Of a DNA stretch of 64,000 nucleotides, positions 26,180 through 44,475 are shown in pieces. Within the stretch, counting starts at the first letter, position 1, and the number at the start of each line of letters is the position of its first letter. A program made the translations under genes and the position numbers. The notes under the pieces were generated by a model. It saw only the letters and a list, made by a program, of their open reading frames with translations, made no database searches and had not been told where the DNA came from. This DNA comes from Macrostomum lignano. Its lineage: Eukaryota. The stretch lies in the NCBI GenBank assembly GCA_002269645.1, contig NIVC01002432.1:1-64000 (forward strand). Reading direction: 5' to 3'.

Positions 26180-44475
<18,296 letters not shown>

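Follow-up and report, generated by a model that had tools for sequence, protein, structure and literature searches.

Two adjacent iGluR-family genes of the flatworm Macrostomum lignano with an altered M3 gate motif and glycine at the Lurcher site

Background

The M3 segment of ionotropic glutamate receptors (iGluRs) carries the conserved gate motif SYTANLAAF, whose eighth residue is the Lurcher site (PMC5430913), as an earlier note on the DNA studied here had correctly stated. In the closed gate of GluA2 a hydrophobic constriction is formed by T617, A621, T625 and M629 (PMC9068512), and opening involves a kink of M3 at the hinge residue A618 (PMC9068512, PMC13635229). The motif is taken to be all but invariant, and gating is altered by nearly all human M3 variants tested so far. 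Here we describe two neighboring genes of the flatworm Macrostomum lignano, termed genes A and B, in which two thirds of this motif is replaced. Both genes lie in the window analyzed in this work, namely positions 1-64000 of contig NIVC01002432.1 from assembly GCA_002269645.1 (64,000 nucleotides), to which all coordinates below refer.

The functional consequences of individual replacements in this motif have been described for several members of the family. The GluN1-A653G variant combined with GluN2A shows a more than 10-fold increase in glutamate and glycine potency, an open probability of 0.40 vs 0.19 and a deactivation time of 516 vs 44 ms, whereas the effects of GluN2B-A652G are milder, with open probability up about four-fold; replacement of the Asn at motif position 5 in NMDA receptors (N650I/K, N649S/T) raises potency too (PMC10973091). 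The Drosophila subunit IR76b naturally has Thr at the Lurcher site and forms a constitutive Na+ leak that is attenuated by a T-to-A change (Zhang et al. 2013, to the extent summarized in PMC7882480). Divergent M3 motifs as such are already documented for the Lambda and Phi classes (PMC6307864), for ionotropic receptors (IRs; PMC7882480) and in recent surveys (PMC13648236), and motif divergence is also known in plant GLRs. The phylogeny of Ramos-Vicente et al. 2018 (PMC6307864) was restricted to proteins retaining at least 4 of the 9 SYTANLAAF residues.

Gate motif and family assignment

In both genes, the GFWW/GLWW segment of M3 is followed by the altered motif and then by LTLN. The translated motif is YYTADMIGY in gene A (31163-31189, minus strand, residues 562-570) and LYTADMIGY in gene B (55402-55428, plus strand, residues 563-571), exactly as had been read in the earlier note, and the stretch YTADMIGYLTLN is identical in the two proteins. 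Compared with SYTANLAAF, the first residue is replaced by Tyr in gene A and Leu in gene B, and five further changes are common to both (N5 to Asp, L6 to Met, A7 to Ile, A8 to Gly and F9 to Tyr), so that only Y2, T3 and A4 are retained (3/9). The four central substitutions had been listed before, while the changes at positions 1 and 9 had been left out. At the nucleotide level, synonymous differences between the two genes are present at 3 of the 12 positions of YTADMIGYLTLN (ACC/ACA, GCG/GCC and CTC/CTG). Three homeologs of gene A (P0004, P0153 and P0154) have 0-9 amino acid differences, which are found only at positions 57-346, 425 and 775 and never in M3 or the rest of the transmembrane domain (TMD). 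Sequencing error is ruled out as the source of the motif, which recurs in the three gene A homeologs and in the paralog.

The sequences support the assignment of genes A and B to the iGluR superfamily as real members of the AKDF type. The Pfam domains Lig_chan (PF00060) and Lig_chan-Glu_bd (PF10613) are matched with 87.8 and 92.7 bits by gene A and with 84.4 and 97.1 bits by gene B, the cut-offs being ~30, and both proteins have the segment order S1-M1-M2 (re-entrant loop)-M3-S2-M4 with Gln at the Q/R site of the pore loop and Asp at +4. Among solved structures, the gene A sequence is best matched by the kainate receptors (GluK1-3), with E about 1e-55 and a continuous alignment from S1 to M4. 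An AlphaFold2 (AF2) model of the gene A monomer, built on an alignment of 67 sequences, has a predicted local confidence score (pLDDT) >90 over the ligand-binding domain (LBD) and TMD (residues ~350-770), with helices where expected and an unbroken M3 helix at 543-572; in a Foldseek search, it matched full-length GluA2, GluK2 and GluD2 chains with E about 1e-36.

Placement of the pair within the superfamily was assessed using neighbor-joining (NJ) distance trees of the LBD+TMD core, the deep nodes of which are weak. In these trees, genes A and B stand apart from the groups with GluK5 (P0040) and with canonical SYTANLAAF-LTVERM sequences, and they are probably not kainate orthologs. Tuning-type IRs are marked by loss of the amino-terminal domain (ATD) and of at least one of the Arg/Thr/acidic ligand-binding residues; genes A and B do not belong to them, because both have an N-terminal region of ATD length and keep the Arg and Asp. 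The two genes might fall into the lophotrochozoan Phi clade reported in PMC12226733 or into the unclassified AKDF clades of the same study; a Branchiostoma 'delta-1-like' group (P0034), which is possibly Phi, did not group with them in the NJ trees. Since only 3/9 motif residues are kept, which is below the threshold of four, genes A and B would be left out of the phylogeny of PMC6307864.

Selection and distribution of the motif

Genes A and B are old sister paralogs under purifying selection. They were joined in 100% of 200 NJ bootstraps, and over the LBD and TMD they share 65% identity, with a saturated synonymous divergence (dS) of 1.09, a nonsynonymous divergence (dN) of 0.27 and dN/dS of 0.25. 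The N-terminal ~350 amino acids are only 29% identical, which bears out the divergence of the ATDs pointed out before. The proposal of the earlier note that the motif is held by selection rather than decaying is supported by the dN/dS of 0.25 at saturated dS, the intact open reading frames (ORFs) and the presence of three homeologs. Decay to a pseudogene is ruled out by the intact ORFs, assembled from 12 exons in gene A and 11 in gene B, and by the same dN/dS. The identity of the motif has to be read with a caveat, as a 12-residue identical run is unexceptional for this pair and longer ones exist, e.g. DFAIGPFTMTAIRQTVIDFS and ALTNCDLLLLSDIFNVATFGWPM; selection is accordingly argued from dN/dS and not from the motif alone.

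The replacements in the gate are concentrated against a background of conserved functional residues. Conserved columns were defined as those with at least 80% agreement among 145 other best representatives, which gave 50 such columns in the LBD and TMD. Gene A departs from the consensus at 9 of them, and four of these nine departures are the consecutive residues 566-569; a run of at least four among nine randomly placed departures has P = 0.023 in a permutation test. The conserved residues kept in gene A are R440, D445, W480, W525, Q534, G535, P540, R546, W552/W553, Y563, T564, A565, L571, T572, C662, C717 and E755. These include hallmarks of the family such as the ligand-binding Arg, the WW motif, QQG with the Asp at +4, the hinge Ala, the L-T pair past the motif, the disulfide cysteines and the Glu of M4. 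The clustering of departures at the gate, with other hallmarks intact, argues for a localized rewrite in constrained genes and not for decay.

The distribution of the substitutions was determined in the 147 closest representatives (clusters at 50% identity), genes A and B included. Position 5 of the motif is Asn in 116 and Asp in 15, position 6 is Leu in 136 and Met in 9, position 7 is Ala in 117, Thr in 16 and Ile in 8, position 8 is Ala in 137, Ser in 6 and Gly in 2, and position 9 is Phe in 112 and Tyr in 9. Within this set, Gly8 is found in genes A and B only, as is the combination of Ile7, Gly8 and Tyr9. Asp5 is carried by further M. lignano paralogs (TYTGDLTAH), a monogenean (TYQADMTAF), nemerteans (TYTADLVAF, TYTADLAAY and FYTSDLIAY) and one mollusc. 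A basic partner co-varying with Asp5 was sought and only clade-wide differences confounded by phylogeny were found; Lys at position 467 was rejected as a partner, being absent from genes A and B.

All nearest relatives identified are spiralian (flatworm, nemertean, annelid and mollusc). In the bootstrapped NJ trees, the flatworm sequences were grouped together with P0084, a sequence of unknown source, in 70% of replicates, and a flatworm-only grouping was obtained in 26%. The iGluR gene family is expanded in M. lignano. A HMMER search of 1.84 billion cluster representatives retrieved a 787-residue protein (P0004) that is identical to gene A over the core, and a word-indexed search with the gene A core returned three M. 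lignano models only, two of which are frameshifted versions of genes A and B. When the 72-residue M3 exon was used in a word-based search, one candidate shared words with it and none scored, and no other protein in that collection contained several 5-mers of YTADMIGYLTLN. A search for a clade defined by YTADM.GY had been suggested in the earlier note: the motif does occur in M. lignano copies, and the M3-exon search revealed no wider clade, so that on the sequences at hand the clade appears to consist of M. lignano copies only. Asp5 (and the string 'ADM') is, judging by the carriers listed above, a trait of a wider clade, and the Ile7-Gly8-Tyr9 combination seems, as far as the present data go, to be confined to the Macrostomum lineage. 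Nothing relevant was retrieved when the searchable literature was queried for the gene name, the motif strings and Macrostomum iGluRs.

Gate mechanics and alternative explanations

The positions of the replaced residues relative to the pore were predicted from helix periodicity and the GluA2 structures, the AF2 model being a monomer. Pore-lining T617 and T625 and the gating hinge A618 of GluA2 correspond to T564, T572 and A565 of gene A and are kept. N619 and L620, which are not pore-lining, correspond to D566 and M567, pore-lining A621 to I568, the Lurcher residue A622 to G569, and the uppermost pore-lining residue M629 to P576. By this mapping we infer that the changes facing the pore are those of A7 to Ile and of the M629 equivalent to Pro, neither of which was singled out in the earlier note.

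We tentatively favor an explanation that falls somewhat short of probable, in which the proteins of genes A and B, members of a fast-evolving flatworm group, are subunits of a tetrameric cation channel of iGluR type that is gated by amino acids, with a gate that has been re-tuned and not lost. Of the gate residues, Thr3 and Thr11, which line the pore, and Ala4 at the hinge are unchanged. Pore-lining Ala7 would be exchanged for the bulkier Ile, the uppermost gate residue for Pro, the Lurcher Ala8 for Gly, and Asn5 and Leu6, predicted not to line the pore, for Asp and Met. By analogy with GluN1-A653G and with the Asn5 substitutions in NMDA receptors, Gly8 and Asp5 should destabilize the closed state, which would lead to higher agonist sensitivity or open probability and to slower deactivation, while a ring of Ile7 residues would provide a stronger hydrophobic seal that compensates for this effect at least partly. 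Overall, the channel would still be opened by ligand, with its gating energetics shifted, and would be neither a dead protein nor necessarily a leak channel. Altered gating of genes A and B, as anticipated in the earlier note, is thus plausible by analogy with GluN1-A653G and IR76b. The same note had raised the possibility of non-ligand gating, for which no evidence was found; the Arg and Asp that hold the alpha-amino acid and both disulfide cysteines of the LBD are kept. A more elaborate version of the favored reading appears doubtful as a whole: the pair would represent a natural rebuild of the gate, specific to Macrostomum, in which Lurcher-type destabilization by Gly8 and Asp5 is checked by an Ile7 plug, yielding a receptor that is hypersensitive and slow to deactivate or else a tonic leak modulated by agonist, probably a small amino acid other than glutamate.

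In GluA2, the agonist is held at its alpha-carboxyl and alpha-amino groups by R485 and an acidic residue (E705, or Asp in NMDA and delta receptors). The Arg equivalent, R440 in gene A, is invariant, and the acidic residue is the Asp of YAYISDST in gene A and of FAFIGDRT in gene B; C662 and C717 are kept. By alignment, the 'LE' motif is replaced by SD in gene A (residues 649-650) and GD in gene B.

Several observations weigh against the favored reading. The alphaF 'GST' motif, placed at residues 599-602 of gene A on the basis of the alignment and of where helix F begins in the model, is TNV there and ANA in gene B. Its Thr thus appears to be replaced by Val and Ala, respectively, which makes for a non-canonical ligand pocket. 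In a recent comparison, the first residue of GST was Gly in all glutamate-selective receptors, and its Thr was important for glutamate potency (PMC13648236). With this motif replaced, the agonist may not be glutamate and may be a smaller amino acid, a prediction that depends on the register of the alignment. No Pfam ANF_receptor match at E<=0.01 was obtained in the N-terminal ~350 amino acids (residues 1-350 of gene A and 1-355 of gene B), and this region of gene A mostly has pLDDT <50 in the AF2 model; a 74-residue public fragment from the same cluster has the UniRef label ANF_receptor. The transcript-based GenBank annotation has no gene call over 44476-54475, a 10-kb interval that includes the first eight exons of gene B, and expression of gene B is for this reason unproven. 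Finally, the motif here has six changes and overall identity is ~35%, a background to which findings made with single substitutions in NMDA receptors may not transfer.

Drift of the motif under relaxed constraint, neutral or compensated, in a clade where DMIG gates essentially like a canonical iGluR, is unlikely. In its favor, the motif commonly varies in the nearest relatives (TYQADMTAF, AYQAELVAF, TYTGDLTAH, TYTADLVAF, IYTATLAAM and others), SYTANLAAF is less conserved in the Lambda and Phi classes (PMC6307864), and receptors with an M3 motif as divergent as VYIGAYINH are retained in surveys (PMC13648236). This explanation has to accommodate a motif held identical in two paralogs across saturated synonymous divergence and a Gly8 that is unique to them among the 147 representatives, and nearly every M3 substitution alters gating in the NMDA receptor backgrounds tested (PMC10973091).

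A constitutively open leak channel, similar to Lurcher GluD2 and Drosophila IR76b, would be produced if Gly8 held the gate open without agonist. The Lurcher site is indeed substituted in both genes, GluN1-A653G is strongly gain-of-function (PMC10973091), and IR76b, with its natural Thr at this site, is described in the summary given in PMC7882480 as a Na+ leak attenuated by T-to-A. However, the A-to-G change differs from the A-to-T change of Lurcher, GluN2B-A652G has mild effects (PMC10973091), and the hydrophobic seal should be made tighter by the pore-lining Ile7, as expected from the constriction described in PMC9068512. A true leak channel, which would have no need of them, is made less likely by the agonist-binding Arg, Asp and disulfide that are still constrained, and we regard it as a poor prospect.

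The conserved pore elements also bear on a non-conducting role, either as a trans-synaptic or adhesion scaffold or metabotropic-type signaler, as proposed for GluD, or as a silent modulatory subunit acting in heteromers only. Conservation extends to the Q/R-site Gln and the +4 Asp of the pore loop, the WW motif, the Ala of the hinge and the Glu of M4, which would be difficult to account for without ion conduction and leaves this role improbable, despite the very divergent N-terminal domain unrecognized by Pfam and an expanded M. lignano family with adjacent paralogs, reminiscent of the chemosensory IRs in which divergent tuning subunits need co-receptors (PMC7882480).

The acidic ring at the gate proposed in the earlier note, in which four Asp5 side chains would line the gate and alter Ca2+ permeability or cation block, is very unlikely: the change from Asn5 to Asp does add charge near the gate, and the open AMPA-receptor gate has been reported as a Ca2+ site with gate residues (Nakagawa et al. 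2024, as cited in PMC12226733), but the constriction consists of T617, A621, T625 and M629 (PMC9068512), position 5 (N619), being two residues from both T617 and A621, would by helix geometry be on the opposite face of the helix and point away from the pore, and Asp5 is found in 15/147 representatives with otherwise different motifs, hence is not specific to this pair.

Gene structure and genomic context

Gene A (26180-44475, minus strand) corresponds to BOX15_Mlig020788g2, whose product PAA57923.1 (P0153) is annotated as a "hypothetical protein" of 787 amino acids encoded by 12 exons; the span was delineated by the exon join, the record range and the Pfam matches, and translation of the 12-exon join gave 0 differences from P0153. 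The start codon and a signal peptide (MGLCVTPLLLAIAAGLSAGEELRIG) are in exon 1 (44403-44475), the N-terminal domain is encoded by exons 2 (40631-40771), 3 (38901-39149) and 4 (36670-36839) and by exon 5 (34884-35324), which extends to the start of S1, and S1 continues through exons 6 (33621-33730), 7 (32681-32771) and 8 (32485-32596), the last of which contains the ligand-binding Arg in GPFTMTAIRQTVIDFS. Exon 9 (31545-31760) comprises the pre-M1 segment, M1 and the M2 pore loop and ends in LLQQG, with the Gln at the Q/R site. The gate motif lies in exon 10 (31052-31269), which encodes M3, modeled as the helix 543-572, and the start of S2; exon 11 (29145-29401) encodes the S2 portion with YAYISDST and the first disulfide Cys, and exon 12 (26180-26465) the end of S2, M4, a short C-terminal tail and the stop codon. 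Exon 4 is followed by a GC donor (CAG/GCAAGA), the GC-AG intron at this site (donor at 36669, minus strand) being required by the public protein model.

Gene B (47720-57205, plus strand) is arranged head-to-head with gene A, and the same arrangement is found at the second homeologous locus, NIVC01001700.1. Its model, built in this work, has 11 exons encoding 792 amino acids and is based on GT/GC-AG sites, the exon phases of gene A and the public fragmentary or chimeric models P0003 and P0005. Exon 1 (47720-47816) contains the start codon and signal peptide and is followed by exons 2 (48252-48365), 3 (49083-49537) and 4 (50183-50593), the acceptor of exon 4 being the least certain boundary, placed by its pyrimidine tract and the alignment to gene A. 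Exon 3 is the counterpart of exons 3 and 4 of gene A, which implies that one intron was gained or lost. S1 is encoded by exons 5 (50872-50981), 6 (51435-51525) and 7 (53424-53535), with the ligand-binding Arg in exon 7, and M1 and M2 by exon 8 (53774-53989), ending at a GC donor (CAAG/GCGAGT). Use of this GC-AG intron (donor at 53990, plus strand) gives QQGQDFFP as in gene A; in P0005 a GT donor 21 nucleotides downstream is used instead, which inserts EFGNFLC between the pore loop and M3. M3 with the gate motif and the start of S2 are in exon 9 (55322-55539), S2 continues in exon 10 (55923-56188), and M4, the tail and the stop codon are in exon 11 (56917-57205). The public models of gene B (UniRef A0A1I8... 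from an older assembly, P0003 and P0005) are fragmentary, frameshifted or fused to ~580 amino acids of unrelated sequence.

A tandem repeat of 85 bp occupies 54746-55338 of gene B (plus strand) in 7 copies with 98% identity. The repeat unit is composed of the last ~62 nucleotides of intron 8, ending in ATCAACAG, and the first ~23 nucleotides of the M3 exon, starting with GCCAGGACTTCTTTCCC. Since the unit spans the intron/exon join, six decoy 3' splice sites are created just upstream of the true exon start at 55322; splicing at a decoy site would reach a TAG after ~17 codons. Long minisatellites are present in most introns of both genes and account for much of the gene length. The arrays of gene A are located at 26659-29137, 30415-30914, 31905-32421, 32913-33570, 34109-34798, 35428-36281, 39281-40200, 40935-41695 and 42619-44390, and those of gene B at 48411-49055, 52732-53276 and 56263-56879. 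In gene A, intron 1 contains a (TAGA)n-like array of 1.8 kb, and another minisatellite has a 22-bp unit repeated 114 times.

Other genes were recognized on the far side of gene A. An ORF for ribosomal protein L32 that is uninterrupted by introns over 24131-24577 (plus strand; Pfam Ribosomal_L32e, E 1.7e-44), annotated in GenBank, is located just downstream of gene A. It is followed at 20178-21295 (minus strand) by a gene for SARAF, a regulator of store-operated Ca2+ entry, two exons of which match Pfam PF06682, and at ~9400-13916 (plus strand) by a BTB-BACK-Kelch (KLHL-type) gene with an intronic 21/55-bp minisatellite at 12345-13301. An eIF5A-like ORF at 2004-2375 (plus strand), with weak Pfam matches and SGKHGSCK around the hypusine lysine, may be a divergent paralog.

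Conclusions

By sequence comparison, genes A and B are divergent members of a well-known family, and the Gly that they have at the Lurcher site is unique to them among 147 representatives. The pair amounts to a natural experiment on how far the gate is replaceable and on which changes compensate for one another. This flatworm clade would be lost without notice from surveys that require at least four conserved SYTANLAAF residues. The value of the pair is limited by the fact that by every other test both genes are ordinary members of the iGluR family.

The resemblance to GluK1-3, GluK5, GluA2 and GluD2 extends to the Pfam domains, the S1-M1-M2-M3-S2-M4 order and the predicted fold. With kainate-type and other AKDF iGluRs, genes A and B share the Gln at the Q/R site with the Asp at +4, the ligand-binding Arg and the LBD disulfide. 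They differ from the same receptors in a core identity of ~31-36%, a gate motif with 3/9 matches, a position outside the kainate and AMPA groups in NJ trees, an Asp in place of Glu at the alpha-amino site, a replaced alphaF 'GST' and an N-terminal domain that is not recognized by Pfam.

The closest relatives, at 29-44% identity, are Cichlidogyrus KAL3310748.1, Spirometra VZI22347.1, the M. lignano TYTGDLTAH paralogs and nemertean, annelid and mollusc 'kainate/delta-like' predictions; no functional characterization of these divergent spiralian iGluRs was found in the searchable literature. Genes A and B are similar to them in having Asp5 and a QG.DFYP segment after the pore loop, and share 'ADM' with the monogenean protein, whereas all the relatives have Ala or Ser at the Lurcher position, and nearly all of them are without Ile7, which is present in the nemertean P0016.

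Among described systems, Drosophila IR76b is comparable as a natural replacement of the Lurcher alanine in a subunit of the iGluR family, and one with a gating consequence documented in the account given in PMC7882480. In contrast to genes A and B, it has Thr and not Gly at this site, has no ATD of the typical kind and is part of the IR radiation of arthropods; in genes A and B, the N-terminal region is as long as an ATD and the Arg and Asp that bind the ligand are present. The same Ala-to-Gly replacement at position 8 is found in the human disease-associated variants GRIN1 p.Ala653Gly and GRIN2B p.Ala652Gly (PMC10973091); these are single changes in a canonical NMDA receptor, whereas in genes A and B the glycine is accompanied by differences at five further motif positions.

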